Of a DNA stretch of 39,999 nucleotides, positions 7,329-39,999 are shown piece after piece (within the stretch, counting starts at the first letter, position 1; each line of letters begins with the position of its first letter). A program made the position numbers and the translations under genes. A model generated the notes under the pieces. It had not been told where the DNA came from, made no database searches, and saw only the letters and a program-made list of their open reading frames with translations. Source of the DNA: Macrostomum lignano (taxonomy: Eukaryota); assembly GCA_002269645.1 (NCBI GenBank), contig NIVC01004637.1, positions 1 through 39,999 on the forward strand. Direction: 5' to 3'.

Positions 7329-7419
<91 letters not shown>

Positions 7420-13623: not shown

Positions 13624-13809
13624 GCAGCTAAAAATAGCCATCTCAATTGTTCGAACATGAAAGTCACGTGACCAAACTGCAGACTCCGGACTGATTTCGA
13701 TTTCTAATTGAGACATCTTTAAAAATGCTGAGAGGAAGCACTGACTGACTCCATCAGCCTTGGGGAAATTTATTGATGAATGAAGTTATATGGATACATA
13801 AATACCTTT

Positions 13810-14310
13810 GAACCCAGATGTGTGGCATGTCCACCACCTGAGAACCCAATTAAATAATGTCCCTCAACTGAGAACCCAATTAAATAATGTCCCTCACCTG
13901 AGAACCCAATTCAATAATGTCCCTAACCTGTAAACCCAATTCAATAATGTCCCTCACCTGTGAACCCAATTCAATAATGTCTCTCACCTGTGAACCCAAT
14001 TCAATAATGTCCCTCACCTGGGAACCCAATTCAATAATGTCCCTCACCTGTGAACCCAATTCAATAATGCCCACCACCTGAGAACCCAATTCAATAATGC
14101 CCACCACCTGAGAACCCAATTCAATAATGTCCCTTACCTGAGAACTCAATTCAATAATGTCCACCACCTGAGAACCCAATTCAATAATGCCCACCACCTG
14201 AGAACCCAATTCAATAATGCCCACCACCTGAGAACCCAATTCAATAATGCCCACCACCTGAGAACCCAGTTCAATAATGTCCACCACCTGTAAACCCCAT
14301 GATGTCAATC
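13810..14310. repeat. Minisatellite, 30-bp unit, about 16 copies
   Basis: Tandem TGAGAACCCAATTCAATAATG(T/C)CC(CT/AC)CACC. Confidence 0.95.
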
Positions 14311-14704
14311 ACCTGCGAATCCAAGATGTCCACCATATGTGAACAATGTCCACCACTAGTAAAACAACAAAAATGTCCACAAGGGAACCAGAATGACATG
14401 CACTCTTACATCAAGTACCACCCCTAATAATGGTGCAAGCAGTTAAATTATTAATAATCCATTTGTCAGTCATTGGCGATTCGTACAAGGCAAAACACAG
14501 GTTCATCACTGCAACTAATCAGACAAATCGTTTACTCATGTAATTTCGTACACACGCAACCCTTCCGTGAATGTGCTGTGAATTCCGTATTTTTACTTGG
14601 AACTGTTTTCGACATTAACATAATATAATCAGTGACATTTATAATTAACATATAGTTGAATATTTCCTTATACAATTTGTTCATAAATATTTGCTCAATA
14701 AATC

Positions 14705-15602: not shown

Positions 15603-15756
15603 TGTGGTGAGGTGTGGTGTATTATATGCTGAGGTGTTCGTGTGTGGCCAAGCAATCTAAAGTTTCTCTAGGCGGTCGCGTGTATTATAAAGAGTTAAAT
15701 ACTCTATGGTACAAACATAGAGAAATGAAAATGAACAGTCAGTCTGGGGATACCAC
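15603..15756 (-). repeat. 3' LTR of the Gypsy element (left boundary approximate)
   Basis: Homologous to 18750-18874 (GGTGTTCGTG..GGCCAAGCAATCT.AAGTTTCTCT.GGCGGTCGCGTGTATT). The purine tract GGTGGAGGGA (15757-15766, minus strand) directly precedes TGTGGTATCC. Confidence 0.85.
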
Positions 15757-18734
15757 ATCCCTCCACCTTTAGTAAAATCAGTCCATTGTAGGAAAACGAA
15801 TTGGCCTCCTCAGTACAGTCTGGTCGGAGTCCACTTCTGCGCATTGTTCTTGGATCGCTCTGTGGTATTTCGGATGCGTCCCTCTTTTCTCGCTGACTGT
15901 CGCTCATTCCTCCTCCACCAGAAAACGTTACCAGAGCCTCGTCAGATTTTGAGTCTGGGAATATCTTTCTGGCCTTGTTAACGTGGCGCTTCTTGATTGT
16001 GCCACTTTTGTTCTCCAGGATCAGCAGTCCTCCGACTCGCTTCCTTACATAGTATTGCTCTGTACCAAAAAAGCTGTCGTGCTTGTTTCTTGCTTCCCTT
16101 TCAATCACTACTGAGTCACCTGTTTTGATGTCGCAGTCACGAGCGTTCCGATTAGCATAGTTGGACATTTTTCTTTTGTAGTCGGCGCCTTTATCTTTCT
16201 GCTTCACCAAAGGATACATTGTCTGGTCGTTCATTTGAGGAAGTTTTGTCCTGTTGCTCTCATTGGCGCTGTTCTGCAGGCGTGCAAGAAGATTTGCAAC
16301 TCCTGTTCAAAACTTGATCCGTTCAAAATTCTGGACCTTCTGATGACTTTGTTCAATGTTTCATTGAATCTTTCCACCTCCCCATTTGTTGCTGGGTGAC
16401 GCGGAATCCGCGAGTGAATGACGCCTTGACTGTTAAGGTATTCGTCAACGACTTTCGAACAGAAATTTGTTCCGTTGTCTGAGACGATTTCTTTCATTGG
16501 TCCAAATAGTGAAATCACTTTCTTTAGAATTCGCACTACGTCGCTCGATTCAGTGCGCTTCATGATGAACACTAGAGGAAATCTCGAGTGGTAGTCGTTT
16601 GGTTTTTTCACCGGCTGTCTGGACAAAATATCTGCCTCGTTGGTGTCGCCTGGTTCATATTTTATGTTAAAGTTGAATGGTTGCAATCTCATTGCCCAAC
16701 GCTCAACTCTTGGTGGTGGTTTTGAGTTTGATGCAAAACACCCGAGTAGAGGTTTATGATCCGTTATCACCGTGAATTCGGCTGCTCCTTTGAGAAAGTG
16801 AGAAAATTTCTCGCATCACCATTTTATTGCCAATGCTTCTCGCTCGATTTGACTGTATCGAGTCTCCACGTCTGTGAGATTTCTACTGGCATAGCAAACT
16901 GGCTGCAGATTTCCATCTTTCTGCCGCTGAACCAAGATCGCACCAAGACCGACAGGACTAGCATCTACTCGCAGCTGTGTTTCTCGCCCTGTTCCAAAGT
17001 ACGCGAGCGTTTCCGTTGAGCTGATCGCTGCTTTGATGCTGTTGAAAGAAGTTTCTTGTTCTGGGCCCCATTCCCAGGTCTTTCCTTTCTTTGTGAGGTC
17101 ATTCAAAGGCTTCGACAAGGTTGCTAGGTTTGGTACGAATCGAGCAACGAATTGTGCTAGACCAAGGAACGATTCAACTTCACTTGGATTGCAAGGTGGT
17201 TTGAACATTTGAATAGCTTCAGTTCTATTCTCTTGGATGGTTATTCCCTTCTCGGTCAGAATAAATCCCATAAAAGTGGCTTTACTCATTCCAAATTTGC
17301 ATTTTTCCTTTCCAACGGTCATGCCGTTCTCCACGAGCCTTGCTAAGACCTGCTTTGGCCTGTTGCTGTGCTCCTTGACGTCCTGTCCATACACAATTAT
17401 ATCATCCTGAATATTTAGCAGTCCTTGTAAACCAGCCAAAACTTTTGTTATGTAGGCTTGGAGATACTCGTAGAATGACGAGTTGACCCAACCCATCGGC
17501 AATCGTTTGTACCTGTATAGCGGTTGTCCAGGGATTCCTGTTGAGAACTTTGTCAGATGTCTCTAGATTCACTGTCCAGTTCAATTTGATGGAACATTTT
17601 CTTGCCATCAATGTAGCTAAAGCAGCTTGCTTCTCCCATATTTGTGAGCTGATCATCCAGAGATGGGATAGGAAATTGTAGCTTTTCCGTTGCCTCGTTG
17701 AGTTTCTTAAGTCAACGGTCAGTCGTACCTTACTAGTCTTTCCTTTTCTGATTCCTGTGATCAAACTTGCTGAGGATCTGGAGTCAATGAGCACTGTACT
17801 CTCAATACCATTGATCTTCACTTTGGTTCTTGTGCCTGCTGAGTCCTTCGATTCAGTCATAGCGACAGTGTTGATTTCTTCGCCATTCGATTCGTCGTTG
17901 CCACTTTGCTGTTCCGGTTGCTCAAACATCTGGATATTTCTGGTGTTTATTCTGTTCCCTGTCTTTAGATTTAGTCTCCATGCTTGCATTCCATGTCACG
18001 AGCGAAGCAATCCCAAGGACGGTGGCCTGTCCTGTTGCATCTGTAGCAGACTCGATCGCACTTGTTGGTGTTTGGAGTTGATGTCCGCTTGCCAGTCTGT
18101 TTGAACTGTAGATTGCTAGTTGGTCTGTTGTTTATTTTGCTGACTGTGTTGCGCGCCTCATTGGTTGGTTTTTCAATGTCTTTAGCCTGCTTTCTTCAAG
18201 GTGAGGTCAGAGCTTTCCTTTAGCAGCAAAGTCCTTAGCGGCTTTGACGTGCTCTTTAGGACTATCAGATCGCGTAGCAGACGATCCTCGAAGCTGAGCT
18301 TTATTGTGTTCTCTCATTTCCTTCAGGCTTGTACTCGACGTGTAAGTTGCAGTACTTTGCTGCACTTTTTAGACGACTGTAGAAGGTATTAAACGGTTCT
18401 CCCTCTATCTGGCTGACTGACAGCAGCTTGTAAGTCTCATGGACGCTGTTGGTTGCACCTTGGAATAGAGCTGAGCGCTTCCTTCGTTGCTTCGTAGCCT
18501 TGTTCATAGTTTACAGTTTGCAACAACTTTCAGATTTTCGGCCCTGCTAAAAGCAATAATGTGGCTTGCTTCTTTTCGTCAGCTATTCCTTGCACTTCCA
18601 TGAACAGCTCGACTTCCTGCACATAGTCGTTCCACTTATCTGAATGTTGAGCGGATCTTCGTCTGGATCGAAATGCCCAATGCTGTATAACTGTGTATAA
18701 CATTCTCTAGTTGCGAGCGTAGCTTTTCTCTTTT

Positions 18735-18749: not shown

Positions 18750-18874
18750 TGTGGTGTTCGTGTGGCCAAGCAATCTGAAGTTTCTCTTGGCGGTCGCGTG
18801 TATTTTAAAGAATAAAATACTCAATGGTACAAGCATACATAAACTAAACCCCCAGTCAGTCAGGGCATACCACT
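18750..18874 (-). repeat. 5' LTR of the Gypsy element (~125 bp)
   Basis: Direct-repeat homology to 15603-15756; ends in ...CACCACA next to the PBS. Confidence 0.85.
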
Positions 18875-20273: not shown

Positions 20274-21211
20274 TATGGAATTCCTTCTAAAAATGCACCT
20301 GCGTCAATTGACAAAGAAGTATCACTACTAAGACTGGCAGCAATCAATGGAAATGTGCTAAAACTTGAACAGCTTCTGCAAAGAGGCGCTGATCCCGACT
20401 CCAAGGATGCAACTGGTCGGTCAGCGATTCACTGGGCTTCCGAACGCGGCCAGGAAGGAGCCGTAAGACTACTCATTAATTGGATGGCGCAGGTCGATTT
20501 GCAAGACAATGACGGACAAAGCCCTCTACACCTGGCCGCTTGGCACGACCATTCAATTATCGTGGAGCTGCTGACGGAAGCTCATGCTGATGTCAATATT
20601 AAGCGAACTTTTGGTGCATCCGCATTGCACATCGCGGCTGGGAAAGGCTTTGAGAAGGTAGTAAAATTGTTGCTTTCATCGAGGGCGGACAGCAACTCAA
20701 AAAGAGTTGATCATGTGACGCCCCTGCTTCTGGCAGCTCAGAAAGGATATACAATCTTGCTACGGGCCATGCTTTCGAAAGCGAATGCTGATCCTAATTT
20801 ATCAGATAATCGAGGAGTGACACCTCTTTGCGCAGCAGCTTACAGCGGCTCTTCAGACTCCATAGCTGAGCTAGTTCTCGCTGGCGCCGACCCGAAAGCA
20901 CTTCTTCACGCGAGAAAGAGTCAGTGTTGCATGCTGCTGCATGCGCCGGCAGAGAAGAAGTCATCCAGCAGTTGCTTAAAGAAGGATGCGATCCAAGTAT
21001 CAAGAATAGAGCTGGATTAACGGCTGCTGTAATGGCGTGCGTATTAGGTCAATGTGAAACTCTGGTTCAACTGATGCGACACAGCTCAACTGTCAATCAG
21101 CTACCGGATTACAGCAGTCTTGATTCTGTGGTGGCATTGCGTCAACTGCTTGATGATCAATCATCAAAGATTGATACTCAGGCTAGCTCGATTACGGATC
21201 CAGCAACAAAG
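20274..21211 (+). CDS. Ankyrin-repeat N-terminal exon of an ANK + Mab-21 gene (frameshifts near 20290 and 20920)
   Basis: Successive ankyrin repeats: GRSAIHWAS, GQSPLHLAA, GASALHIAA, HVTPLLLAA, GVTPLCAAA, MLHAAAC, GLTAAVMAC. Donor AAA|GTAAGT near 21212. Confidence 0.88.
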
Positions 21212-21349: not shown

Positions 21350-23214
21350 GGTTTTATTCAAGAAAGAGCCAAGATACAAAGTGCATTAGCCGAAGTCACA
21401 CAGTCCATAGTGAGAAGCAGACTAGACTTTGGCGAGTTTGTTGAGCACGACATTCACTTTGTTGGCAGCTTTCCCGAGGGCTGGTCAAGCAGTCTGGTGC
21501 GATTGGACGGCCGGACAGACCATGGCTGGACATTGATGTCACTTTATTGACAGAAACCGCGTAATTCACTTTGAGGAGACTTGCGAATGTGACAAAAGTT
21601 TGGGAATTTATGCCATTGAAGTCCAAAACGGACACGTCTACTGCCCAAACACAGGTGAGGCAAAAAAGATTGTTTCAATCGGGCAAAAAGTAACAATTTA
21701 CAGCAAACACGTCTTTTGATTAGCAAAAATTGACACTTCAATTTGGTCCAATTTCCTTTTCAGCTGAAAACCCGCCCAATCCTGGTTTGGAATGGACTGG
21801 AAACCAGCAGTGGATCTCGTGTGGGCTGTTCGCTCCTGCAGTTACCCTCCAATCGAGTTACTTCAACAGCCACTGTATGAGAAGAGCAACATCGACCCAG
21901 CTGTGCTGCAAGACTTGAAGAGCACTCTGTCGCAACCGGAATTTCCGTGTCATTTAGTGACGGCTGCCTCTCCGGGATTGGAGGGCCATCAGTTGCGAGT
22001 GAGCACCATATTTCTGGAGCGAAAACTGTTCAGAAGCCTTAATGACATTCAAGGTCAGGTGTTTGTGCTAATAAAGTTCATAGTGAAGAAGTGATCTCAC
22101 CACAAGTTCAAGGGTTGAAAACTTATCACGCTAAGAATCTCTTATTTTATCTGCTGGATGAAACACCAGCAAAAGACTGGAAGCCTGAAAGTTTGATTTA
22201 CCTAACGAGAATCGCCTTACGAAAGCTACACAGCTGCTTAGTCTGCAACTCAAATGATGAAAATAAACTGATGAATCACTTTTTTCTACGGAATGCCTGT
22301 CTGTATCTCAAGAAAGGACACAGTGGGAAGAAACGCATCGCTACTGTCGTTAATAAAGTCATTAGTGATCTTCATAACGTTATTCTCGAATTCAAGGCCA
22401 ATTTGCGGCCAGTCAGGCCAGACGGCTCTTTCCACTTTCATCCGTTCCTTATGCAGCCAGTGATGAAAGCAAGGAGCACGGAAATCCACTGGGACAACAT
22501 CCAGTACGAAGATCTTTATGACGCAGTGCGAAGTTTGCTATTGAGATTGGGCAAGAATGACTGTACTAGCGACCATGAGCTGCAGTCGTTGCTGAAAGAC
22601 GCATCGAGGATTCCCGACTATGCATTTTCTGCCCGACAGTGTCTGATAGTCATGTCTTATATGAAGTTCGGCAAGCTTGATGAGGCTCTCCACGTATTAA
22701 GTACCGGTGCATCGAAAGCACTTCTTCGTAAAGGAATTCGATTAGAGTTTAAAGCAGCAGACCAACAGATTATACAGAAGTAGTTTGGAAGCAAATAAAA
22801 CATTGCGACTCAGCTTGGAAGTTTTGTTTTGAGCATGACACGCAGCTGGCCTTAAATTTCCTGCCGCAGAGTCTGATCGAGCTCTTCCCTGTAACATGTC
22901 TGTACATAAATTGGTACTATATAAATTTTGATGCTTTCTGGAAGTCTCTGGAACTAGCAATGAATGCATTAGTTAGTTTCATTGAGTCAAGCGCTTGGTT
23001 TGAAGAAATCCTAGAAACTGATACCTCCGACGTGCAGGACTTGCTAACAGCGCTGGAGTTTTGCTCAGACGAACAACTGCTGGTGAGACTGATTCACAAA
23101 AACAAAAAGTGCGTTTTGACGCACAGACGACTGCGAACGAAAATAAGCCAGCTGGTTAGATTAAAAGTAAGTTGCCCGTCTAGTAATAGAATGTTTCTTA
23201 ATATTCTTCATTGA
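21350..23214 (+). CDS. Mab-21/cGAS-like receptor (cGLR) nucleotidyltransferase domain plus helical C-terminus; several frameshifts/stops (pseudogene or assembly error)
   Basis: FVGSFPEGW (21464) ... DID (21529-21537, next frame) ... PAVDLVWAV ... LRVSTIFLERKLFRSL...QVFVLIKFI ... GLKTYHAKNLLFY ... W...L...L..CL...MNHFF. A probable intron lies at ~21655-21763. Confidence 0.8.
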
Positions 23215-23971
23215 CAAAAGCACAAAAAATGACGACCAACTTTTCTATTTTATAAAAACAGCCACAAATCGTCTCTGTGAGCGTTGAACGAGCCGCTGCA
23301 TTGGCCGTTAAGATGCTTCGGCAAAATGGTTACTACTAACGATAACAAGACCGACCGATTAAAAGAACAATGACTTTGACCTTGACACCAAAGCGACGCG
23401 ACTTTTCAGTATTGTAATACGAGCGTAGACAATTTTTTAACCGGCGGTGATAATGTTTGTGTACCGCTTAAAGTCTAGACGATTTTAGTACACTCATGCG
23501 ACATTTTAAGATGGAGTGTAGAATTGTAAAGTCTTTCCCACTTCGATTTTTTACCAAGACATGAATAGTACGATGGCTAAGTTTAATAATACGTAATTTT
23601 ACATTAGCAGGTTTGTAAACAACCTGACGGGCCTTTGGATGACGCAGAATGTAGAAATGACACAATCGAATATATCCTTTAAAAAATAAATATGACGCGC
23701 AAAAAATCAACGTTCCAAAAGAGGATATATTCTAGATATACCCCATAACAAAAATGACGAAACTTAAACCAATAAAACAACACAAGATTTTCCCTATCCC
23801 AACAAAAATAAAGCTAAAATCATAATACTACTTTAAGGCGAAAAATATCGACACATTTTGACTTTAAAAGTCAAACAACAATCCTTCAAATAACTATTTG
23901 AAGTTATAGTTATTCAAATAACTATATAAATAATCTATTTGCACCTGCGTATATCAGCCCCATTGAGTGTC

Positions 23972-24012
23972 ATTTCAAAGCTCTCTATTTAATCCTATAT
24001 ATTGACAGCGCT
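23972..24012 (+). repeat. Left arm of a 41-bp inverted repeat (partner 33497-33537)
   Basis: ATTTCAAAGCTCTCTATTTAATCCTATATATTGACAGCGCT versus the reverse complement of 33497-33537; 39/41 identical. Confidence 0.9.
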
Positions 24013-24496
24013 GCCATAGTTTAAATCGATGTTTGAATATACGGTGCTCGTACATTTTATTGATACTTGATGATTGACAGTTTAGCTCAGAAATATTTCG
24101 CCAGCTTCTTTAGTAAGGGCTCTTATAAACAATTTAGCTTGGCTTTTACTTTTGGTTTGGTTTGGTCTCCCGTTGTGAGAGTTCCACTTTTTATCTATAT
24201 ATTGTTTTGTATTATGCACAGCGGTGTGTTTGGTGGTGTGATTCGCGCTTTTCCCGATCTTTCCACCGTAGCTAGAGTTTGAGTAATGACCGGTTTGCCT
24301 AGCCGGCTTGTACGGCGTGGGCTAACCGGCGTTTGCGATTGGCTAGGAGGGGTTGTTTGGCTCCACCCGTGGGGGGTGGGTTTGCGGCGTTGGGGTGGGT
24401 GGTCGTATTCTGTGCCTTTTAGGCCTCGCTTTGAGCTGAGATCGCTTGTTCTCGCGGCGTTGAATTTCTTGTTCTCGCGGCTACCCCTGAATAGCA

Positions 24497-25571
24497 ATGG
24501 CTGACTCAAACCACAGAGTGCATATGCCCGAGACTGTGAAAGGCCTGAAGCCGCGCTTAGACAGGCAGGCCTCTCTGCAAACGGCTGTAAGGAAGTACTC
24601 AGGGAGCGCTTGGCTGCTCATCACGAAGCAACGCAACTGGAACTCAATGCCCCGACTGATCCACGGCAAAAAGAACTAGACACGGACAACACTTCCAGAA
24701 GCAGTCAAAGCAGCGGACGTGGAGCTGCGGCCTTTGAGCCTCAAGGCGGCTGGAGCGGCGGCAGGGGCCCGACTGGCGCTGTGGGAGGCGACCTGGACAA
24801 GGAGCTGGAGCTCGCGGAGAAGAGGGTGCGCCTCCTGACTCTGCGCAAGCAAGAAACCGCTCTAGAAGCTGACGCTCGCGATTTACGGAGACGCAATGAT
24901 CCCCCCGGTGAGATGTCGTGCCTTTCTGAGAGGGTTTTGAATGAGGGCCCCAACCTTGAGTCAGAAGGGACAGTTGCCGGAGGGGCGTACAGGCCGGTGG
25001 AACACCTAAGTAGCCGTAAGCAGAAGGATGCCGGGTTGGCCACCACAGTCGATAAATCGGGCCACGTGAGTATGAGTCAAAGTCAGCGGCTGTTGAGTCG
25101 ATGTCATTCGGTGACTGGATTACTGGAAACGCGAACGCGCTGATTCACATGTTGCATGACAGCAAGCTGGTGCGTCTTTCCGAGACGGGAACCGTGGATG
25201 TTTCGGAGCTGGTTGAGTATCTTCGCATTAATGCTCGGGTTGGCGAATTGTTCGATCTTGGCTTTGATCGGCCGAAGGTGATGCGGTTCGATGACGAGTG
25301 TCGCACGCAGAAGCAGCAGAATCAGAGTTGGAATCAGCCAGCATCTGACCTTGGGCTTGTGGCAGCGTACCTGATGGCGCCAGGCAAATCGGATCAGGCG
25401 AACGCTCGTGCAACTCGAAAAGGAGGCCAGGGAATCTGTTTTGACTTCAACCGGGCTGGTGGCTGCTCCAGAGCTCAGTGCCGATTTGCTCACCGATGCC
25501 GCCGGTGCGGCCAGAGCCACTCCGAAGCCTCCTTCCACCGCGAAGGGGATCCGGAGTTTCCACGCCAATGA
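24497..25571 (+). pseudogene. Ngaro ORF1 (gag-like), frameshifted
   Basis: N-terminal coiled coil (LELAEKRVRLLTLRKQETALE) and C-terminal CFDFNRAGGCSRAQCRFAHRCRRCGQSH, the CCCH/CCHC finger typical of Ngaro ORF1. Confidence 0.75.
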
Positions 25572-25703
25572 CTCGAGGACTCAGGGGCACGGGAACATCA
25601 GGAGTCGCCCCCGTATCCCCTTAGTGAATCAGCTGTTCAGAGCGACTCCCACACCAAAAATGCTATCTCAACTCTAGAAAATCTCGTCAATACCGATAGT
25701 TTT

Positions 25704-27227
25704 ATGAAAAATCTTTGCTTATCGAGTGACATGCATCTTGAAGCCTGGAAAGAAGAATTGGAAGAAATTGATATCTCCAAAGATGAAGCCAGTTTTATAA
25801 TTTCTGGTGTAACTCATGGATTCCGCATTACTAACAAGATATGCAGTGATCCCCAGCCAAACATCGAACTGGAAAACTATTATTCCTTGAACATCAACAT
25901 TAACATGCATTATTCCGATGCACAGATCCAGAAAGAAGTTCTGCGCGGTCGGTATCGCCGCTGCCCGATGGCATCAAGCCAGATTGTCAGTGCCTTGGGG
26001 CCATTCCTAAGCCTGGATCCGCCTCAGTGCGACTCATTTACGATTGCAGCCGGCCTGAGGGACTCGCGGTTAACGACTACTACTCAATGCCTTCAAAATT
26101 CCGTCTGACATCCGCTACGAACTTCAGCAGGACTGCGTCCCGGCTCTTACATGTGTAAAGTTGACCTTAGCCAAGCCTACCGTTCGTGCGGGATCCACCC
26201 TGATGATCAGATGCTAGCCGGAATTAAGTACTTGCCTCCTGGTAGCCGCGAGCCAGTCTACCTCATAGACACCAGGCTTCCATTCGGAGCAGCGGCTTCC
26301 GTCTACTGTTTTCAAAAGCTGAGCTCTGCCATCAGACTCATGATGATCAAACGCGGTTTCAATAACACGGAGGCCTATATTGATTATTTAGCCTTCTGCG
26401 GTTCCTTGACTGAATGCAGGGACTTCTATTTGGAGCTCAAGAGTCTCGTTGTGCGCCTCGGATTTGAGATCAACGAAGAGAAATGTGTGCCACCGACTCA
26501 GTGCATGGTTTTCTTGGGAATCAGATTCGAATCTGTGGCTGGAACGATGTCGCTACCGCCCGAAAAGTTGGAAGAGCTGCAGCTGCTGCTGAAAGACTGC
26601 CTGGCGAAGCCGAGGCTTTCCAAGTGGATTCTGCGGAGGGTGATTGGCAAACTGAACTGGGCTGCGCAGGTTGTACCTCACGGGAGGCCTTTCCTGAGGG
26701 ACCTCATCGACGCTGCCGATTCACTGAAAAGCCCGAGTCATCGAGTCAAGATGAACACTCCACTGCACAGCTGCTTACTCTGGTGGCGCCTTGCGCTGGA
26801 AAGCCGTCGATCTAGACCGACCTGGCAGCCAAACAAGCCCTGCCTCGCCATGGAGACAGATGCTTGCGGTCCAGGCGGTGCTGCTATTCTCCAAGATTCG
26901 AATGGTTGCCGGGACTGGCTCTACTTCAGCTGGTCAGCTGATGCTGAGGCCGAGTACGAAAATCTTCCTATTAATTACAAGGAGGCTGTGACCGTCCTTC
27001 TCGCGATCATCTGCTGGGGTAGCCAGCTTTTTGGCTATCGTATTGGCGTTTTCTGCGACAACGGCAATAAAGGTTCGTCTAGAGAACCCATCATTCTCCG
27101 GCTGCTGCAACAGCTGGCTCTGCTCTGTGTTCAAAATGAACTCGATCTGAAGGTGCTGCACGTCCGGGAAATTTTCAGTTGTTGGCCGATCCGGGTTCCC
27201 GGTTGCATAGCCGCAGTCAGCTGGTAA
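25704..27227 (+). pseudogene. Ngaro RT-RNase H
   Basis: KVDLSQAYR, DTRLPFG, YIDY (YxDD with D>Y), FLGI, IGKLNWAA, TDACGPGGAA, INYKEA, FCDN. Confidence 0.88.
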
Positions 27228-27329
27228 ATTTTCTGTGTCGGGTTATGGGACTCTCGATGTTGATGATGAAGAGTTCAGCAGCCACTGCCTCTGCCCCGCC
27301 ACCCGTCGCTTTCTCAATTTTCAGGTCGC

Positions 27330-28300
27330 CTCCCTCCTGCAGCCGCCAGCCACGTCGGGCCCCAAGCCCGCCGCCTGCTGAGTCTCGCCTACGCTAGCAG
27401 CTCAAGGCGGTCACTGTCATCCGCCGTCGCCTCCTGGCTGCGGCATTGCCGGGCTGTCGGCACCGATCCGGTCAACTCTACCGTCGCCACGTTACTCAAC
27501 TACCTGGCGGAGCTGTGCTTCACTCGTCTTTGGTCGCCCAGTAGCCTCCGAGTACATCTCAGCGCAATCTCTGCTTTTCTAAGATCCGCCAGCGCGGTCG
27601 ACATCACGAAGCATCCCCTGTGCTCCTCCTTGTTCGAGGCTCCAGGCGCGCCCTCAGCGGCACCCCACGGCGAGCTCAGGCCCTCTCACCTGACGACCTG
27701 CTTCGCATTCGTCGCACCATTCACGATAGCGACCCACGAGGCGTTGCATGCTGGGCGGCAATCCTGTGCGGCTGGTGGGCGATGTTGCGCAAATCCAGCC
27801 TGTTCCCCGAGTCAGCAGGAGTGCAAGCGCTCCAGCGAAGGGACCTGAGAGCAGTGCCATCCGGCCTGGTTCTGAGCCTGAGGCACAGTAAAACCAACCA
27901 GTTCGGAGCCCGGGTGCACCGCGTGCTGCTGCCGAAACTGTCCGGTGGCCACCCACTCTGCCCGACTGAAGCCATGATGCGGCACCTACGTGTCAATGGC
28001 ATCTCGGCTCCGTCCACCCCGCTCTTCTCAGCGTCAAGCGGCTCAAAGCGGGTCAATCTGTCAGCTTCCTATTTCGTGCGCTTTCTCCGAAATTCCCTGC
28101 GCTGCGCTGGACTTCAGGGCCAGGGTGTGCTGTACTCTGCGCACAGTCTGCGGCGGGGCGGCGCTACGTGGTGCCTTCGAGCTGAGCTGGCAGAGGATGA
28201 GATCAAGGCTGTCGGTGACTGGCGCAGCGACGCGCGACTGGTGCACGACCTGAGAGTGACTTATCCTTCCGAGCTGCCAAGAAGATGGCTCAGGCGGTGC
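27330..28300 (+). pseudogene. Ngaro tyrosine recombinase
   Basis: SAM-like N-terminus (TLLNYLAEL...SLRVHLSAIS), then MLRKSSL, HSKTNQ, AHSLRRGGAT and GDWRSDARLVH, with His where the catalytic Tyr is expected. Confidence 0.88.
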
Positions 28301-29223
28301 AGCGGCTTTGCTAACTCAGCCATTCATGGTTTTTGTGCGTGTTGTTAACTTCTTTTTTCTTCGTCGGTTCCTTTGCTTTTACTGTCCTTGCTTGCCTTTG
28401 TAATGTTTTATTTCCTGTTGTTATGCTCGTAATCTTCGTGTTCGGTGTTTTTTCGCTTTGTACTCGTTTTCTTTCGTGTCCTTTCGTCTTTGTGTTTTGG
28501 CATTGGGCTCAATTGTGCCACCTGTGTTCTCACCAAGCGCCTTTCGTTGTCTCCCTTTCTGCCATAGAGCTAAAGATAGTAATCGCAGTTTTCACGATTG
28601 TTTAAAAGCAAATACGTGCTCTGAGTATGCTCAAGATTGCGCTATGCTCAGTGGATAAATAATCAGCGGTCCCAGTGCGTGACAACGATTGTCTGGCGAG
28701 CGCCGGTAGGCGCGAGCCATAGACAAATCGTTGTCACGTGCTGCGACCGCTGATTCTTTGCATTGTTTTTCTGTTTGACGATCCTACAGACAATGCATTG
28801 TTTGTAGTAATGGATTGTTCTGCATTAAAAATGTGAATAATGATTGTCAAATTGCTAAACAATGAAAGTGATAGGTGGTTCATGGTGGAAGATACCTATC
28901 TAAGCAAATTTGTTGCACCAAACTTATGATTGCGCCATTATTGTAAAGAATCGTGTCAAGCAGTTCCAAATATGTAAAATTATAAACTTTAATTAGTCAC
29001 CATAGTGGAGTCAAGATTGCGACCAATGAAATTTCATCTTCTCTTTGAATTATTGACGACTGACTTCATCCCCATTTTTGAGCATATTTTCTTGCATCTT
29101 TCTTGCATATTTAATCTATTTCTCGAATTTATATTTCGCATCATTCCTTCAATTCTTATTTAATTCAATTCAATTCAATTCCAATAGATAAAACATTTAT
29201 TGAAAAATTGTTGCAGTGGGAGA

Positions 29224-30801
29224 AATGGACAAAGTCGTCCATTCAGCAGCCCGCCAGCACCCAGCAGCCCGCAGCAGCACCCAGCAGCCAAAGAAAACGC
29301 GGGCCGCCAGGCAAGAATACATTTGCCCGTTCGGCAGCTGCATGCCAATTAAAGAATCCAGATTCAGCGAACACATCAAAAGGGCGCACTCAGCTGTTCA
29401 AGAAAGCACGAAAGAAAAGCTAGCAGCAACTGCACAGTAAATGCACAGTAACCAGCAGATGCTCTGCAGAGAAAAGCTCTGCAAGCGCTGCGAGCTGCAG
29501 TTGAGCTGCATACGCACCAAAGAACTGCTGGCCCGATGCCCGAGACGGCACTACAGTGTGCAGTCTGCGGCGAATGGAAGAACAACGCGAATCAGCTTAG
29601 CAGCCACAAGCGAAACAGCCACCCTAGCGTAGTCCGAGCCGAGAAAGAGCAGAAACTGATCGAAGCCAGGGCCAAAGTGCCAGCCAGAGCAGCAGTGGCT
29701 GAGCACCCATCGACAGTTGACGTGGAAGCACTTTGCGTCTTCCTGGCCAGCTCTCTCGGCGGACGGAAAAAGCCGGCTACGTTCCGCGAGATCCGCTGCT
29801 ACCTCAAACGGCTAATGCAGCGTCTAGACATTACGAGCTTCAATCAGCTGATCAGCGAAGATCTGCGCGATAAAATTAGCGAGTACCTGAACAGTTTGTC
29901 CTACTCGATTCTAAAACAAATGGTGTCCGCACTTGAGAAATTCGGTAATTTTTCAATTACCCGCCGTTTCCAGCAGATCGTAGACGGTGGGATGCACCAA
30001 CAGCTGACCTCGTACAGGCAGTCCACAAAATATTGGACTGCAAGTTCAATGGGGTCGAAGGCTGAATATTACGCGAAGCTTGTTGACCGCCGAGAGGAAG
30101 AATTGCTCACAGGCGAGCAGATTGCAGCAGTCTTTCAGATGAAAGACGCTGTGCTGGCAGAAGCGCGATCAACCAAGGACAGGTGAGTTAAATTTTTCCC
30201 AATGCTTTTTATGCCGAGGTATAAAAGTTTGATGGGGCTTAATATGACACTGGAATTCAAAATAGCACTGGTATTCAGAATGGCACTGCAAATTTTATTA
30301 GCTCAGAAATTACAGAAATCTGAGACAGCTCAGAAAATTACCTCTAAATAAATAAATACCTCTAATTCCATCCGCACAGGACGGTGACATACCTGGCCGT
30401 TGGCATGGTTATCTGTTTTGGTGATGGAAATGCCAACCGGCAAGGCGTAGCCTCTACCTGCCTAATCTCTGACGCCCGGCTCAAGGTGGCTCAAAGCACC
30501 TAACGAGCCGTTAAAGGTGCAAAGTCACAAGTCCAACGCCAAGCATGGGTCGGCCTGGGCCAGCGCTTGCGCTGAGCGTCCAAAGGACGATGACCTGGCG
30601 CTCGTATTTCCTTACGGGTCCTTTGATAGACTGTTCTATCAATATCGAGAAAGGTATTCTCCACTGCTCAAGAACGTTACCGTTTCAAATTTTCGGCAAT
30701 GGTTGGAAGTCATGGGCCTGTCGAACTGCTCTGCGGAGGAACAGCGGCTCATGGCTGACCACCAGAATCACAACGAAGGTGTGCAGCGCCAATTTTACCA
30801 G
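29224..30801 (+). CDS. Spliced C2H2 zinc-finger + tyrosine recombinase (Crypton-like) gene; one frameshift near 30490; 3' end unresolved
   Basis: Fingers CPFGSC..RFSEHIKRAH and CAVC..LSSHKRNSH. Phase-2 intron 30183-30379 (AG|GTGAGT..CACAG|G). Catalytic-like series NANRQG, SHKS, VTVSNFRQ, QNHN and QFYQ, followed by a donor at 30802. Confidence 0.72.
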
Positions 30802-32275
30802 GTAAAATTGCTAAATTTGCTAAATAATTGTCACAGAAGACTTCTGAAACTACAAAAATTACATTTTAAGCGTAAAATTGGATGCCTTAGCAACTAAATA
30901 GTCCTGAATAAGAACTAAATTCAATACACTGAATAGCTGCATATAACATAGGTTCAGTCATTAAAGCTGCGCATTTGAGCCCTTGCACCAATGTACGAAT
31001 GTAGTTTACACCATTACGAGTATTATATTGTTGTGTCTCGACCTAATGGCCGCTGGACGGGTCAGGGTTCGGGTCCTCCCGCCTAAGACACCCCGGTCCC
31101 AGCCCTCTACCCCGGCTACTCCTACGCGCCCTTCGCTCGGCTCGGCGAGAGTTCGCCGGACCGACCACCCTGAGATCAGCGAGTGTTTACCGGTCTCAGG
31201 TCCCTACCAGCTCCCGGCCCCACGCGGCAACCCAAAAGACGAAAGCACGTGCTCACCTCTGCGTTTACAGACTTATTCGCGAAGCGTTTATTGGCGAAGC
31301 GTTTATTGGCACGAAGCAGAATAATCAGCGATTGCGGGAGTCGAGTTATTAGCTTGCAGAGAGCAGGTTTGCAGAGTGACGCCGAAGAACGGGATAGAAT
31401 ACAAACAAAAAGAAAGAAACGTGGAGCGCAGCACGCTCAGGGCGGGCCCTTAAATAATATTTACACAAAAAAGGGGGGAGGGGTGGGGCAGAATGGAGAG
31501 GGCGAGCCAAACCCTGGGGCCCAGCCGGCTTCTCAGCCAGCCAAGCCAATACGAGCAGCCCCAGGGTGAGGCGGGCAAAGAGGGAGGGGGTAGGGTCAGC
31601 ACCTAGATTGGACAGAAGTTGCGCCGGGGACTGGGTGCAGAAAGGGCTAGGCCAGGGTTAAGGCTTACGCCTCTCACAAACCCTGGCCCGGGCGCGAGAC
31701 GGGGGACGGGGCGGGGTGGCATGAAAACTGAAAACACAAGCACTGGAAGGGCGCAGCCCAACAATATCGTATTTTTTTTATTAATTTTACTGATCTGACT
31801 CCATCAAACCTGCAATCCCGTCTGAAAATGCAAACAGGGCCAGACCAAGGAGAGGCGAAAGAAAGGACGTGACCTAACGAAGAAGTTGGCGTCGAGTGCG
31901 ACAGCGCTGCAAGAGGACATCCTGAGCGCCAAAGCTCCAATTCAAGGCAGCCGGCTGCAGAGGGCGGCCAACGAACTCGCCGGCGGCATCGATGGCGACA
32001 GTGAGTACAGCATGGTTGCTAGCATTTGAGGGAAATTAGAATTTGCGAATAACCCGTACGATTAAAATGCGCTATAAATGCAAAGAAATTTATTAATTTT
32101 GTCAGAAATGACCAAAAAAATTTACCTTAGCAATAAAAAAGATGGTCAGTTCTAAATTTTTTCTCCTTGTTAAAGGCTTAAAAAACTTGCTTTTCTAATT
32201 AGATTACGAATTCTGCTTAAAAACACTTGCTACTTTCTATCATTAGATTACGACCTGGACAGCATTCTGCATAGG

Positions 32276-33061
32276 ATGGAAAATCTGCCGTCTGCTGACA
32301 TGGACTCCGTGTCGGTTGCGGGCCCATCAGCGACTGCGTCCAGGGCTCCTCCGCCGTGCCGATGGCAAAAACTGCTCCCGTCCTGCTTGCCGCTGGTGGC
32401 GCTGTGCCTGGCGACGCTGTGCCTGGCGCCACCGTGTCTGGCGCCGCTGTGCCTAGCGACACCGTGGCTGGCGCCGTGCTGCTTGACACCGTCCTGTCGG
32501 ACGCCGTCCTGCTCGCCGTTTGACTCGGAGGATCTCAATGGTATAGTAAACCAGCTGTACGGCAACAGCGATAACGACATTGATGGCGCTGTTGTCTCCG
32601 CGTCCGCTGGCGATGGCGTCGCCTCAGCCTCCGCTGCCGATGCCGCCGCTGGCAACGCTTCCGCTGATGTCGCTGTCCACATAGGATCAGGACGTCGCCT
32701 AGCTAGAAAGCGACCGCCAGCTCGAGCTCCAGCCGATAGTGCAGCCAAGCGTCAGAAAATTCAACCTGGATCGCTTGTACTAGGTTACTGGCCAACAGAT
32801 GGAGAAAACTGGTGGCCGGCGATGGTTTGCCTACCCCGGCGCGGAACAAACTGCACCAAGAGCTTCTGCTCGAAGCAAATTCACGTGCAGTTTTTCGATG
32901 AGCCTCCTTCTAGCGCGTGGCTACACCAGTGGCGGTTCGCCAGCGGAGCAGAGGCGGCTCCAAAAAACGCTTCTAAACAGCTCTGCCAAGCTTATCAACG
33001 CATGACAGAAGCCAGCAAATTGTATTCATGCAAAAACTTTAACTGCACTTTTAAAATGTAA
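32276..33061 (+). CDS. PWWP-domain protein with low-complexity N-terminus
   Basis: PGSLVLGYW...NWWPAMVC...IHVQFFDEPPSSAWL...LCQAYQRM matches the PWWP pattern. The upstream part has 15-nt repeats encoding (L/P)CLAP. Confidence 0.75.
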   Translation: MENLPSADMDSVSVAGPSATASRAPPPCRWQKLLPSCLPLVALCLATLCLAPPCLAPLCLATPWLAPCCLTPSCRTPSCSPFDSEDLNGIVNQLYGNSDNDIDGAVVSASAGDGVASASAADAAAGNASADVAVHIGSGRRLARKRPPARAPADSAAKRQKIQPGSLVLGYWPTDGENWWPAMVCLPRRGTNCTKSFCSKQIHVQFFDEPPSSAWLHQWRFASGAEAAPKNASKQLCQAYQRMTEASKLYSCKNFNCTFKM

Positions 33062-33496
33062 TCTTGTAAAGCGCAATGTAAATGCTTATACTATACTACG
33101 CTCATCTATCTTATTGAAAAAACATAACAAATAAGTATATTGCTTCTTTTCCTACGCCCTTAAAAGTTTCAGTAGCTTTATTAATTTTATAATACTTTCA
33201 CCATTTAAAACTAATTGCATATTTGCACAACGATGTAAGCGTGTGATAGAATTAATATACCATTTTCAGTAAGAATATTATATGCAGTTTAAACGAACCA
33301 CTGCATGAAAACTAAAAGACATCCATATTCCTACGCTCCTACTCGTAGAAACATTCCTAATTCCCATTCTTAGCTAATTATCACACCTGTCAAATACCGA
33401 ATCAAGTATCAAATGCAGAAATTACATGTATGATGCACTATAGCCGACAACGAATGCCGTAGACAGATTGACCCGTTACACTCAGCATCTCTAACT

Positions 33497-33537
33497 AGCG
33501 CTGTCAATATATGGGATTAAATGGAGAGCTTTGAAAT
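33497..33537 (-). repeat. Right arm of the 41-bp inverted repeat
   Basis: AGCGCTGTCAATATATGGGATTAAATGGAGAGCTTTGAAAT. Confidence 0.9.
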
Positions 33538-36500
33538 TATTTTTTAATTATACGAATTTACTTTTAGTTTTTTAGTCAGTTTTCGTCCTATTTTTGTTTG
33601 CATGCTGTATCGAAGATATGAAAATTTTTGGGTAATTTTGTTTAACTCTTCGTTTGGGTCTGTGAAAAGATATATTATCATTTCTACTTGCAGTAGTGTA
33701 AAAAGACTTTTTAATTGCGTCATGGTTGCATCCTAATATCTTGGATATATTTATTAAGGTGTCATATATGCAATTTCGTTCCTAGGTTATCCCCTTCAAT
33801 TGGAGCGTCATTGCCCCTACTATAGGCAAAACCAGCAGTAAGGCAATTCTGCCAAGGACAACTAAAGCAACGTGATGAGGACGCACTTTTTCCCAAATCC
33901 CGCGCTAGCACATGGGCTCTAAACTTACTTGCCTACTAACAGTGGGCAGTGGGCATTTTATCATTTTTCTGCGAATAGTCATAGAATCTATACTAGATAT
34001 AATGTCTGGCCATACTAGTAGTCATAATAACATAGGCATTGCTTTTTGGGTCATAAATCATCGCTTTCGAAGCTGGTCTGACAGCCACCTGCGCCTCACT
34101 CAGTGTTGAAACGGGCGCCAGATGGTCTGAGAGGATGCGGGCGGTAGCTTTTTTCGCATCAGTTTGACAGGCCATCAAGATTTATGAGGTCAGAGCTTAT
34201 TGTTCGGATTCACTCAAGCGTGTGACAGCTTTGACAGCTATACGTTTTACCCCTAAAAGTACTTTGGGATTAGCGATTAGCGATTTCTCTTCATTATCTT
34301 CACTTTCTATTTAATAAGAGCTTTCTAATGTATATTTTTTCATTAATTTCTGTCAATCCTACGCGAAAAGTCATAAATCATTTTGTTGCGATTTTGAGTG
34401 ATTTATGGCCGCACCTGTCATCTCTTTACGACCCTGTGGGAACTGATAGGATCTCTCGGTCACGTGATTCTGGGTAGCGACAAGCTTAGCCAATCAGAAA
34501 ATTCGGCGCTCATTTTAACAAAACGGCTCAGCCAATCAGAATCGACGTGTTCCGTTATAACAAACTGCGGTCCAGTTGGCGGCTATTTAAACCGGAGTTT
34601 TTGGCCCACTCGGACCTCAACCTTCCGACCTTCCGGACTTGCGCTCACCTCCTGGGACCTTAGCCTAGCTTGAGGCATCCCGGAGCGCGACCGTCGTTTC
34701 TTGATCCCAGGACTGCGACTTCCCCCATCATCATCAAGGACGAGTCCCCCGGTCATCAGCAGCGAACATCAAAGTTAAGATCATCACCTGCTAGCTATCA
34801 GCGAAGATTGTGTCAGCATCATCCCGAATCTACAGCTGCGAAGCACTAAGCCGATTCGGTCACTGTGGATTTCCTGGTCTCCGGCTGTTGAGTTTCTGAT
34901 TGGTTGGGTGAGGGGCTACCTAGACTTGCTTGATTGGGTGATCCCTTATCTGTCCCCTGTTTCAGTAGCTGAATTAGGCGCACACTTTTGCTCATTTTGT
35001 TCAGTAGTGCTGTAATCGAGGCAGAAGTCATTCAATAATACTTCTAGTAGTCTGAAACTCCAATTCAATCTGAAGTGTGAAGTGATTTGAGGAGAAGGTT
35101 AAATCTAACAGTTATTTTTATCGGTTTTATTTCTTTGTTCGCCGATGGCTCAGATGAATAGCTAAGCTAGTAGGCGCCGGTCACAGTGGACCAATGGCAA
35201 AGCAGTTCTCAGTCGATCAATCAATCAAATCAGTGAGCAAAACTGCCAGAAGTGCAGAATCGGCACCAGAGATGTACTTTGTGCACTCTAGGTTCGCCAA
35301 GCGGCTCGGGTAATGAATCGTGCGAGTCTCTGAAGTTCGAGTTAGTCTATCATCAGCGCTACGAGAGGCTGGTTGGCGCGTTAAAGGCCAAAAGTACAAT
35401 TCCTCGTATTTAGCAATGTAATAGTACATGTAGCTACCCCATAGACTCGCCACTGCAAGAATCCCCTGCACAAGTCCCCTCTGTACCTGCATGGCCAATG
35501 CGATCTAGTCCCAGCAGTGTCCCTTATCATCGGCTATGACTTCGAGATTGACAGCAAAAAGACACTAGTTGGCAGGTAAATGCAAAGCCCCTCTAGTCGG
35601 AAGCCCGATTTCGAGAGCCCCGGTGTGGTGAGCCAGGACGCACGGGCTGGTGGCAGCGAGTTAGCTTAGTCTGCGGATTAGCTAATTTCTACCTTCAAAA
35701 TTCTCCCTGCTTGTCTCTCGCTATCCCTCTCTTAGCTATAGGACCTAGACTGCTCGCCACACGATCAAGCTACCATGGGGCTGACCATCTGACAGGAGTG
35801 GGGGCCAGGACTCTAATTGATTTATTTCTGAGACCTGAGGCCCGAAGGCTTGTTCAGAAAATTAGGATTCAATGTTAATTTCTTGTTCTACGTACAATTG
35901 CATATGTCTTGTGCATGAAAACCATTAAAATGGCACGGCTCAGCTCATTGGAATCTATTTTGTCATCCTTAGCTGACTGTGTAACAATATTTGTAACAGA
36001 GATGATAAAATCGATTCATAAAACAAAATATTTGAGCTGTGCCATACTTTTTATGATCTTTAGGTACAGGAAATGTAGGTAGAATAAAAAGTTTACATTG
36101 AATCCTAGTTTTCTGAACGAAAGCTATATATGAATATCAATAGAGCGATAAGAAAGGCACAACATATCAAAAGATGAACACTGGATCTGCCTCCTATCAA
36201 AAGCAATAACAATTTTTGTGCTGAAAAAATGTAAACTTCCGATCTCCGTAGTGTATATCTCGGCGAAAAGTAGCCTTTAAAAAGTAGCCAAGGACCCACA
36301 CGGACCCCACCTGTAGCCAAAGTGCAATAATTGGTCACTCGGTCACAGTGTGACCGAATGGCTGCCACCACTCTATGTGACCTGGATCTTACGACCAGAC
36401 CTCTCGAGGCTAGAGCCCCGTCTGGATTGGTTACCAGGAGATTTAGGCTAACAGGGGAGACGCATGCAGCCGAGTACAGGGCCTCTGCTTGGGGCATGAT

Positions 36501-37052: not shown

Positions 37053-37057
<5 letters not shown>

Positions 37058-37108
<51 letters not shown>
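37058..37108. repeat. (GA)n microsatellite
   Basis: Uninterrupted AGAGAG run. Confidence 0.97.
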
Positions 37109-37111
<3 letters not shown>

Positions 37112-37253
37112 CGGAGTGACCGAGGACGGCTGTAGGCTTCGGACAGGCAGGCAGTGAAGCGGCGATGCGCTGAAGCGACGAGGCGCTGATGTAGCTCAGG
37201 TGATGCTGAGGATGCTGGGCGGTAACAGACCGCGGGCCGGCAGAGGTTCGTCC

Positions 37254-37879: not shown

Positions 37880-38645
37880 GTGAGAAATACATCCTCGACT
37901 GTATCAAACTCCTCAACGTGTTGGGTTCCGCCAACAAAATTACCCTTAAGTGGGTTCCGGGGCATGTGGGGATCCGAGGAAATGAGTTGGCTGACACCCT
38001 TGCAAAAGTTGGTGCCTCCGGCTCCTCTCTCGGCCCCGAACCTCTTGTCCCGATTCCTGGCTGTGTCATCGACTCGCGCATCAAAGCGTGGATCAGGACT
38101 CAGCACCGCTCGACTTGGGCGAACCGCACGAACTGCAGGCAATCCAGAGGCGCTGTCCCTCAGCCCTCTCACCAGCTCCGGAAGCTTCTCTTGCGCCTCT
38201 CGCGCAGAGACATCCGGGCTGCCACCATGACCCTCTCTGGTCACGGCTGCTTCTCCAGGCACCAGTACCTGCAGGGCAACGCCACCAACGCCACCTGCAG
38301 TTTCTGCAACTCAGGTGACGAAACCGCTGAGCATTTCGTCAGCATCTGTCCCGCCTTCACGCGGGCCAGACTCACTTACCTCGGGCCACACACATCTATT
38401 ACTGAAGCGTGCAAACCCGAAAACTTTAATCAGCTCATGCGCTACCTTCGGGCCACCCGCAGGGCTGAACTCTCCTTTCCAGAGAGCACCATAGCTGCTG
38501 GCGACACTGGGGGACCTCCCTGGGCGGCGCCAACCCTCCGTCCATAGCGACGCGTCGGCCGTTCAGGGACTAGCGGAATGGGCGCTCGCGCCTTCCCACT
38601 GTGTCCCCTCCGGGACAGCCCTGCAGCTAAGTCAAAGTAAGTCAA
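37880..38645 (+). mobile_element. 5'-truncated non-LTR retrotransposon 3' end (RNase H + CCHC finger; I/R1/Loa group)
   Basis: ITLKWVPGHVGIRGNELADTLAK (RNase H C-terminus) and LSGHGCFSRH...CSFCNSGDETAEHFVSICPAF. Short AAGTCAA-like tail near 38630. Confidence 0.9.
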
Positions 38646-39769: not shown

Positions 39770-39787
39770 CTGCGGGTGCGCAAGGGT

Positions 39788-39999
39788 TGGGGCGATTCTT
39801 TTCAGGGGCGATTCTTTAAAGGGCGATTCTTTGAGGGGCGATTTTTTTGAGGGCGATTCTTTTGTGGGGCGATTCTTTGAGGGGCGATTCTTTTGCGGAG
39901 CAATTCTTTTGCGAGCAATTCTTTTGTGGGCGATTCTTTTGAAGCGCGATTCTTTTGAGGGGCGATTCTTTGAGGGCGATTCTTTTGATGGCGATTCTT
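39788..39999. repeat. Minisatellite, GGGGCGATTCTTT(T)GA-like unit, running off the window
   Basis: Directly visible tandem units of about 16-18 bp. Confidence 0.95.

Follow-up and report, generated by a model that had tools for sequence, protein, structure and literature searches.

Organization of the locus

The window analyzed here is a 39,999-nt stretch of contig NIVC01004637.1 of Macrostomum lignano, in which a 41-nt inverted repeat encloses a gene for a zinc finger (ZnF) tyrosine recombinase (YR), an open reading frame (ORF) encoding a PWWP domain, and a decayed retroelement with a YR of its own. All of the genes between the two arms lie on the + strand, and the G+C content between the arms is 0.45-0.60, compared with 0.34-0.36 in the adjoining kilobase on each side. 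From left to right, the interval and its flanks contain the following features, in which RT stands for reverse transcriptase and features listed without a strand have none assigned.

23651-23810: outer left flank, with degenerate inverted similarity to 33538-33687
23811-23971: an extra 161 nt, locally palindromic, between the outer left flank and the left arm
23972-24012: left arm, here read as the left half of a split palindrome; inner tip AGCGCT
24013-28656, + strand: decayed Ngaro/DIRS-type YR retrotransposon with gag-like, RT/RNase H and YR ORFs
28657-28809: 153-bp hairpin repeat with 34-nt arms, 88% complementary, and a 103-nt hairpin at 28657-28759
29225-30897, + strand: ZnF-YR gene, encoding two zinc fingers, a helical N-terminal domain of DNA-binding type and a YR catalytic domain
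30898-32275: 1.4-kb spacer, G+C-rich and A-skewed, with no recognizable coding content
32276-33061, + strand: PWWP ORF, 261 amino acids, intact, with a low-complexity N-terminal half and a C-terminal PWWP domain
33062-33496: AT-rich 3' stretch reaching the right arm
33497-33537: right arm, here read as the right half of a split palindrome; inner tip AGCGCT
33538-33687: outer right flank, adjoining the right arm directly, with degenerate inverted similarity to 23651-23810

The inverted repeat and its flanks

The left arm (23972-24012) reads ATTTCAAAGCTCTCTATTTAATCCTATATATTGACAGCGCT, and the right arm (33497-33537) is its reverse complement, 39 of the 41 positions matching (95% complementary), with 9,484 nt between the two. 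A search tolerating up to three mismatches finds the 41-mer at just these two sites of the 40-kb window, and two matches never arose in 100 dinucleotide shuffles. The pair is the sole long inverted repeat of the window that is not low-complexity, and the others are microsatellite artifacts. All of the top-ranked inverted repeats are formed by (CT)n and (AG)n microsatellites at 7335-7415 and 37057-37126, about 29.6 kb apart. Both inner arm tips consist of the palindromic hexamer AGCGCT (24007-24012 and 33497-33502), and rejoining the arms over a single AGCGCT gives 19 dyad matches out of 20 about the hexamer. The right end of the inserted DNA falls at 33496; assigning AGCGCT to the insert would move it to 33502.

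Inverted similarity between the two sides extends outward from the arms. Local alignment of the outer left flank with the reverse complement of the outer right flank scores 28, which is higher than all 644 comparisons with real AT-rich control segments (highest score, 27), and blocks of the form AATATATCC...ATGACGC are present on both sides, near 23669 and at 33716-33751. Inward of the arms, inverted similarity between 24013-24200 and 33297-33496 reaches only p ~0.07 against real-sequence controls. Since the similarity continues outward and is not significant inward, the sharp edge of the repeat is its inner edge. Self-comparison of 23000-34500 recovered the arms and local hairpins only, and no target site duplication (TSD) of at least 5 bp was found within 8 nt on either side of the outer arm ends. 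Further copies of the arms or flanks were absent from the rest of the window and from 70 kb of sequence at the M. lignano loci described below (about 110 kb in total), and the arm sequence had no match in JGI metagenomes. A first-pass annotation of this DNA had described a 41-bp inverted repeat, 39/41 identical, which bracketed a ZnF-YR gene and a PWWP ORF on the same strand and was accompanied by weaker similarity further out; our repeat search recovered the repeat at the same positions, with both genes inside it on the + strand, and the blocks and flank score bear out the outward similarity.

A family of zinc finger recombinases outside Pfam coverage

The ZnF-YR gene contains a GT-AG intron (30183-30379) and two frameshifts, near 29438-29480 and at about 30486-30516, and its product has a deletion of about 14 amino acids relative to the family to which it is compared here. 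A 31-nt GT-AG mini-intron at 30486-30516 was considered in place of the second frameshift, and the frameshift is preferred because the conserved E-x-L-x-V strand that immediately precedes HK[TS] would be encoded by the supposed intron. An exhaustive HMMER search of 1.84 billion cluster representatives returned eight relatives, with E values from 5e-19 to 7e-8 and 23-31% identity. In the alignment of the nine sequences, the YR motifs GNAxR(P)D, (E)F-x-V-x2-HK[TS], [TS]-x-x-R, H and (Q)xY are kept in the order seen in tyrosine recombinases, and there are two conserved zinc fingers, C-P...H-x4-H and C-x2-C...H-x4-H. A hidden Markov model (HMM) built from four of the relatives, leaving out the window protein, matched the window at 29452-30183 (E 2.5e-10), 30366-30500 (E 6e-5) and 30466-30894 (E 3.7e-11). 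The window gene is thus a decayed member of this family. The same HMM detected no family-like segment downstream of 30894, and a model in which the YR gene is spliced into the PWWP ORF was rejected for want of a family-like C-terminal exon beyond that point.

Profiles for known recombinases did not recognize these proteins. Pfam Phage_integrase, DUF3504 and DUF3435 gave no match to the family proteins even at E values up to 10, and the family profile found no YR among PDB sequences, matching zinc fingers only. Structural comparison was more informative. A model of the core of the M. lignano relative (mean predicted local distance difference test score [pLDDT], 79) had XerA (5hxy) as its top PDB match (E 8e-3, probability 1.0), followed by the Tn1549 integrase and an integron integrase, with poxvirus topoisomerase IB at rank 6, so that these four account for four of the top six matches. 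The model of the window protein itself was poorer (pLDDT 69, and below 50 in the catalytic part), and its best PDB match, lambda integrase (E 0.5), was not significant. The family HMM, the motifs and the YR-fold model of the relative together confirm the assignment of the gene as a ZnF-YR.

The family has few members. Word-indexed protein searches with the ZnF-YR protein, the PWWP ORF and the family profile returned nothing, or only the relative P0007, and exact-sequence look-ups of the 216-amino-acid ZnF ORF and of the PWWP ORF returned no record. In a metagenome collection the family profile found a single 2.5-kb contig (L006), and no relatives were found in viral and prokaryotic genome collections. 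Relatives on Logan and ENA contigs contain introns, so the family is eukaryotic. Overall, the ZnF-YR family is small, eukaryotic and outside Pfam coverage.

M. lignano copies with nucleotide-sharp ends

The relative P0007 is M. lignano PAA91811, and its 90% cluster adds two members on other contigs. The three loci (L001, NIVC01000073.1; L002, NIVC01000217.1; L003, NIVC01000033.1) carry copies of one element that are 99.2-99.8% identical to one another.

L001, 8481-16903: M. lignano element copy
L002, 7692-15640: M. lignano element copy
L003, 4399-11902: M. lignano element copy

Outside the shared block there is no similarity among L001, L002 and L003, which are therefore three unrelated loci; the L002 copy lies within the span of a ubiquitin-conjugating-enzyme gene and the L003 copy within the span of a TRAM/LAG1/CLN8 gene. 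The element is 7.5-8.4 kb long, its length varying solely with the number of 447-bp coding tandem repeats, and it contains one long ORF and no RT. The ends of the copies are identical to the nucleotide, 5'-CCAT(A/C)CTTTCCAAATCG...CCTGTAATGGAAAAGCC-3', followed by CCAT in L002 and L003. With the right end GGAAAAGCC, the ends can be summarized as CCAT...GCC|CCAT, a 4-bp direct repeat. The three copies have no terminal inverted repeats (TIRs). Subterminally, TTACAG(G) occurs five times at the left end and twice, as the reverse complement, at the right end; the window has no equivalent of these subterminal repeats. In the circle junction that would follow from these ends, GGAAAAG-CC-CCAT-A-CTTTCC, the tetranucleotide lies between short inverted half-sites.

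These ends are the features that define Cryptons, which lack TIRs and are flanked by 4-6 bp direct repeats reflecting microhomology with the target (Kojima & Jurka 2011, PMC3212892; PMC13465315). With three copies more than 99% identical and ends sharp to the nucleotide, the M. lignano family looks to have been active recently. Its excision, its circular junction (GGAAAAGCC-CCAT-ACTTTCC) and its choice of target are open to direct test in a model flatworm.

A palindrome around the L001 copy

The key comparison for the window is with L001, where the element copy is bracketed by a 54-nt, 96% inverted repeat (8432-8485 and 17743-17796, 9,257 nt apart). These arms lie outside the mobile unit: homology to L002 and L003 begins where the left arm ends on its inner side (...TTTCGT|CCATA...). 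Rejoining the L001 arms gives a palindrome about 108 nt long, in which 18 of 20 positions at the junction are dyad matches. The two arms differ at two of 54 positions and are thus more diverged than the element copies are from one another, so that the palindrome probably predates the insertion.

A second insertion separates the right end of the L001 element from the right arm.

L001, 16904-17742: 839-bp Tc1/mariner-like fragment with 87-nt TIRs

The fragment encodes a Tc1/mariner-like DDE C terminus (LPPYSSFLNAAEQ; DDE_3, 18.5 bits, under the cut-off). The motif CAGCGCNGCCATAG occurs in the window at 24006-24019 and in L001 at 16932-16945 and 17721-17734, near both tips of the Tc1-like TIRs; with about 0.3 occurrences expected for the comparisons made and no further similarity around it, we judged it, post hoc, to be compatible with chance and set it aside.

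A probable pre-existing palindrome split by insertion

Taking the two loci together, we think it on balance probable that the arms in the window are the halves of a pre-existing palindrome split by one or more YR-mediated insertions, and not the ends of an element comprising the recombinase and PWWP genes. The palindrome would have occupied the middle of a larger, degenerate inverted repeat within AT-rich DNA, perhaps of foldback or miniature inverted-repeat transposable element (MITE)-like origin. About 9.5 kb of mobile DNA would have entered its exact center, within or beside the AGCGCT that now stands at both junctions, and this insert would be made up of the decayed Ngaro/DIRS-type retrotransposon, the 153-bp hairpin repeat, a decayed Crypton-like transposon and the PWWP ORF. 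The Crypton-like part would have encoded a single protein with two N-terminal zinc fingers, a helical domain of core-binding type and a tyrosine recombinase catalytic domain. By analogy with Cryptons and the M. lignano copies, such an element would leave as a circle, and its recombinase would pair the circle junction with a genomic site sharing a few bases (CCAT in M. lignano, possibly AGCGCT or part of it in the window) and exchange strands through a phosphotyrosine intermediate, without target duplication. A twofold-symmetric site would suit a YR dimer, which would explain why two of the four insertions examined lie at a palindrome center. For the window, we infer that the arms were once contiguous, and likewise the order of the insertions, the circular intermediate and a preference for palindromes.

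Several observations are in line with a split palindrome. A sharp inner edge is expected for insertion into an old, longer inverted repeat and is unexpected for the terminal repeats of an insert. A short sequence at both junctions is what Crypton-type exchange at microhomology leaves, and AGCGCT is compatible with this. Moreover, the recognizable genes between the arms consist of YR-type mobile DNA and the PWWP ORF, all on a single strand. Against these stand five points. An uninterrupted copy of the palindrome was not found in the accessible sequence, nor was a second copy of the window's own YR family found by word-indexed or exact-sequence searches; the left junction adjoins the Ngaro-like unit rather than the ZnF-YR gene, so that either element may have entered first, and the AT-rich stretch from 24013 to about 24190 may be part of the Crypton-like element, with the retroelement nested in it; the weak inverted similarity inward of the arms ranges from p 0.015 to 0.09 under other scorings; the insertion sites of L002 and L003 are not palindromic, so that the preference amounts to two cases of four; and the analogy spans a distant family, in which the window protein is 21-26% identical to its relatives in the alignment.

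The first-pass annotation had taken the 41-bp repeats as the ends of a single mobile DNA element, about 9.6 kb long or some 5 kb once the Ngaro is subtracted, to which the ZnF-YR and PWWP genes both belong. In its favor, the repeat does exist, with the two same-strand genes inside it, the inward similarity of 24013-24200 to 33297-33496 could represent decayed subterminal repeats, and inverted ends are known in some YR elements, such as the inverted terminal repeats (ITRs) of DIRS elements and the TIRs of some Starships (PMC13465315). We nevertheless regard such TIRs as improbable, because there is neither a TSD nor a direct repeat at the outer ends, because similarity runs on beyond the supposed termini, and because the relatives are mobile without TIRs while the L001 arms lie outside the mobile unit. 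TIRs would also require that the Ngaro landed at, or no more than about 200 nt from, their inner edge, and the relatives lack a PWWP ORF. What this annotation had said of the contents of the interval fared better: the relatives and the M. lignano copies place the ZnF-YR gene in a family of mobile, YR-encoding DNA elements, a retroelement does lie beside or inside the ZnF-YR element, and the PWWP domain is upheld by the scores given below.

It is also unlikely that a short repeat unrelated to these elements, similar to a MITE or a short interspersed nuclear element and ending in ...TTGACAGCGCT, supplied both arms by landing twice, independently, in opposite orientation and about 9.5 kb apart, so that the arms bracket the genes by chance. 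A sharp inner boundary with outward similarity would fit two facing copies with a common terminus, and the region is dense in repeats. Yet neither the arms nor the flanks recur elsewhere in the window or in the M. lignano loci, and an abundant MITE family behind the 41-bp motif was not shown in those ~110 kb. A long-range inverted repeat of different sequence also brackets the ZnF-YR gene in L001, so that chance would be needed twice, and a perfect palindromic hexamer at the inner tip is a further coincidence, of about 1 in 64.

The resemblance between the two loci invites another explanation, that the insertion itself made the flanking inverted repeats, for example by hairpin or foldback repair that duplicated the flank in inverted orientation. 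The two ZnF-YR loci do share similar arm lengths (41 and 54 nt) and spacing (9.3-9.5 kb). This origin seems very improbable to us: the L001 arms, with mismatches at 2/54 positions, are more diverged than the >99% identical element copies, the L002 and L003 insertions have no such repeats, and we know of no YR mechanism that creates flanking inverted repeats.

The PWWP ORF

The PWWP domain matches PF00855 with 28.5-29.4 bits, against a gathering cut-off of 25.6, and its best PDB match is the PWWP domain of MSH6 (2gfu, E 4.2e-7), followed by NSD3 and NSD2. PWWP domains of the MSH6/NSD type belong to a class that reads H3K36 methylation. The ORF lies 1.4 kb downstream of the ZnF-YR gene on the same strand and is intact, whereas both neighboring elements are broken. 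Its N-terminal half contains a 15-bp tandem repeat (32378-32505, seven overlapping copies), and the same repeat opens a 166-amino-acid antisense ORF (32248-32748). Word-indexed search detected no homologue of the PWWP ORF, and no recognizable PWWP ORF or domain is present in the 8-kb M. lignano element or on contigs L004, L005 and L006. The first exon of the M. lignano gene, encoding the N terminus, resembles a small, Tudor/PWWP-like beta-barrel by eye; it was set aside, having neither Pfam nor PDB support.

What links the recombinase to the chromatin reader is thus only their adjacency at one locus, and the PWWP ORF could be a captured or duplicated piece of a host MSH6/NSD-like gene. A Crypton-like transposon made up of two genes, ZnF-YR and PWWP, in which the PWWP protein would tether the recombinase to chromatin and palindrome centers would be preferred as targets, seems improbable to us. 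If true, it would represent a YR DNA transposon with a chromatin-targeting subunit of its own, in a YR lineage without a described family signature.

The Ngaro/DIRS-type unit and the hairpin repeat

The unit that adjoins the left arm has gag, RT/RNase H and YR in the order of Ngaro elements and on one strand, in broken ORFs.

24497-25571, + strand: gag-like ORFs with a CCCH knuckle
25704-27227, + strand: RT/RNase H fragments; RVT_1, E 2.9e-6, with a weak RNase H match
27620-28348, + strand: Ngaro-like YR ORF with the motif AHSLRRGGAT...GDWRSDA

The RVT_1 match, at 27.6 bits, is slightly below the Pfam cut-off of 29.6. The gap of about 390 nt between RNase H and the YR ORF is too small for a methyltransferase domain. 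Split direct repeats (A1...B1A2B2) were not detected above shuffles (p ~0.5), either between 24013-24500 and 28349-29215 or in the 3' region, and window self-comparison showed neither an internal complementary region (ICR) of DIRS type nor a recurrence of the arm ends inside the interval. Either the retroelement is truncated, or decay has gone too far for its terminal repeats to show. Profile comparison of the ZnF-YR family with the window's Ngaro YR gave no similarity.

The position of this unit raises the question of whether the whole interval is one DIRS-type retroelement, with the arms as its ITRs and the ZnF-YR and PWWP genes as extra or inserted cargo. DIRS elements do possess ITRs, and here RT/RNase H and YR ORFs begin just inside the left arm in the expected order. 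Nonetheless, we give this explanation very little weight: an ICR is missing from 23000-34500, the methyltransferase has no room, the similarity of the arms continues outward, and a second, unrelated YR inside such an element would be unprecedented, the two YRs here having no profile similarity.

The 153-bp hairpin repeat to the right of the Ngaro-like unit has a counterpart at M. lignano L001 4903-5045 that shares its boundaries, is 94-95% identical to it and has no Ngaro adjoining it; the repeat probably represents a small MITE-like family. Apart from it, no other part of the window matches L001, L002 or L003. A TGCGCT at 28640-28645, considered as a third core between the Ngaro and the remainder of the insert, was not significant.

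Other features of the window

An ankyrin-repeat ORF (20355-21020, + strand; Ank_2, E 6e-42) is followed by an ORF with a Mab-21 C-terminal domain (22091-22783, + strand; E 1e-7). The two possibly represent a single host gene, of cGAS/Mab-21 type, whose end lies about 1.2 kb to the left of the left arm. Further to the left lies a Ty3/gypsy-type pol on the - strand (15704-17989), with RVT_1, RT_RNaseH_2 and rve in broken ORFs, flanked by 89-nt direct repeats (15642-15730 and 18760-18848, 88% identical) that may be remnants of long terminal repeats. Two ORFs resemble the tails of non-long-terminal-repeat retrotransposons, one at 8255-8830 (+ strand) with no Pfam match and one at 37918-38547 (+ strand) with an RNase H match (E 7.6e-6). 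Satellite arrays occupy 146-993, 1781-2805, 9997-11028, 13737-14390 and 39773-39987; they comprise two 23-bp arrays, a 183-bp repeat in five copies (four of them 99% identical), a 30-bp array that reads as a - strand ORF, and a 15/16-bp array at the end of the window.

Comparison with known systems

Crypton DNA transposons, reportedly described by Goodwin and colleagues in 2003, are YR-encoding class II elements. They are rare and poorly characterized in animals, and to our knowledge no animal Crypton has been shown to move in the laboratory. The ZnF-YR family resembles them in encoding one large YR protein extended by a DNA-binding module and in having introns; like them, the M. lignano element has no RT, TIRs or long direct repeats, and its 4-bp CCAT repeats match the target. 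A circle-and-integrate mechanism is presumed by analogy. The differences are several. The family has no detectable similarity to Pfam Phage_integrase, DUF3504 or DUF3435, in a comparison made with Pfam profiles and PDB sequences; it has two N-terminal zinc fingers, one CHHC-like and one C2H2, and not a GCR1_C, helix-turn-helix or C48 peptidase domain; its HxxR box has Thr or Ser in place of the first His; and two of the four insertions lie at palindrome centers, with a possible PWWP partner ORF in one of them, the window. Cryptons are themselves polyphyletic (PMC13465315).

Of the retroelements, Ngaro/DIRS elements are matched by the left 4.6 kb of the insert, with its gag-like, RT/RNase H and YR ORFs in Ngaro order and no room for a methyltransferase. 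The unit differs from them in that its ORFs are broken and neither split direct repeats nor an ITR/ICR arrangement can be found. The RT of the window lies 2 kb upstream of the ZnF-YR gene, in this separate Ngaro-like unit with its own YR. The insert is unlike a cut-and-paste transposon with TIRs, having no TSD and no DDE domain among the ORFs between the arms. Starships carry a DUF3435 captain YR at one end together with cargo genes and are fungal; the ZnF-YR family differs from them in having no DUF3435 match and in its animal host.

Chromatin readers serve as targeting modules in other integrating systems, among them the chromodomains of chromoviral integrases and the PWWP tether of LEDGF/p75 that is used by HIV integrase. 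The window is similar in having a PWWP domain, nearest to those of MSH6 and NSD2/3, downstream of a recombinase gene, a likeness known here from adjacency alone, and dissimilar in that the ZnF-YR relatives have no PWWP ORF. Should the link prove true, a DNA transposon would here have a new means of reading chromatin.

Site-specific YR integration at dyad-symmetric cores is familiar from Cre/loxP, XerCD/dif and the lambda Int core. The M. lignano junction likewise has inverted half-sites at the crossover tetranucleotide, and two insertions lie at palindrome centers. In contrast to those systems, the M. lignano element is not strict in its choice of target, the three sites having only CCAT in common, and the palindromes are much longer than a recombinase core site. 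The recurrence at palindrome centers might reflect a target preference arising from the twofold symmetry of the YR synapse, or a general fragility of palindromes. For annotation, it is a caution that an inverted repeat around a recombinase gene can be the target of insertion and not the ends of a transposon. Set beside these systems, what is new here is a Crypton-like YR lineage with N-terminal zinc fingers and no Pfam signature, seen twice at the center of a palindrome.

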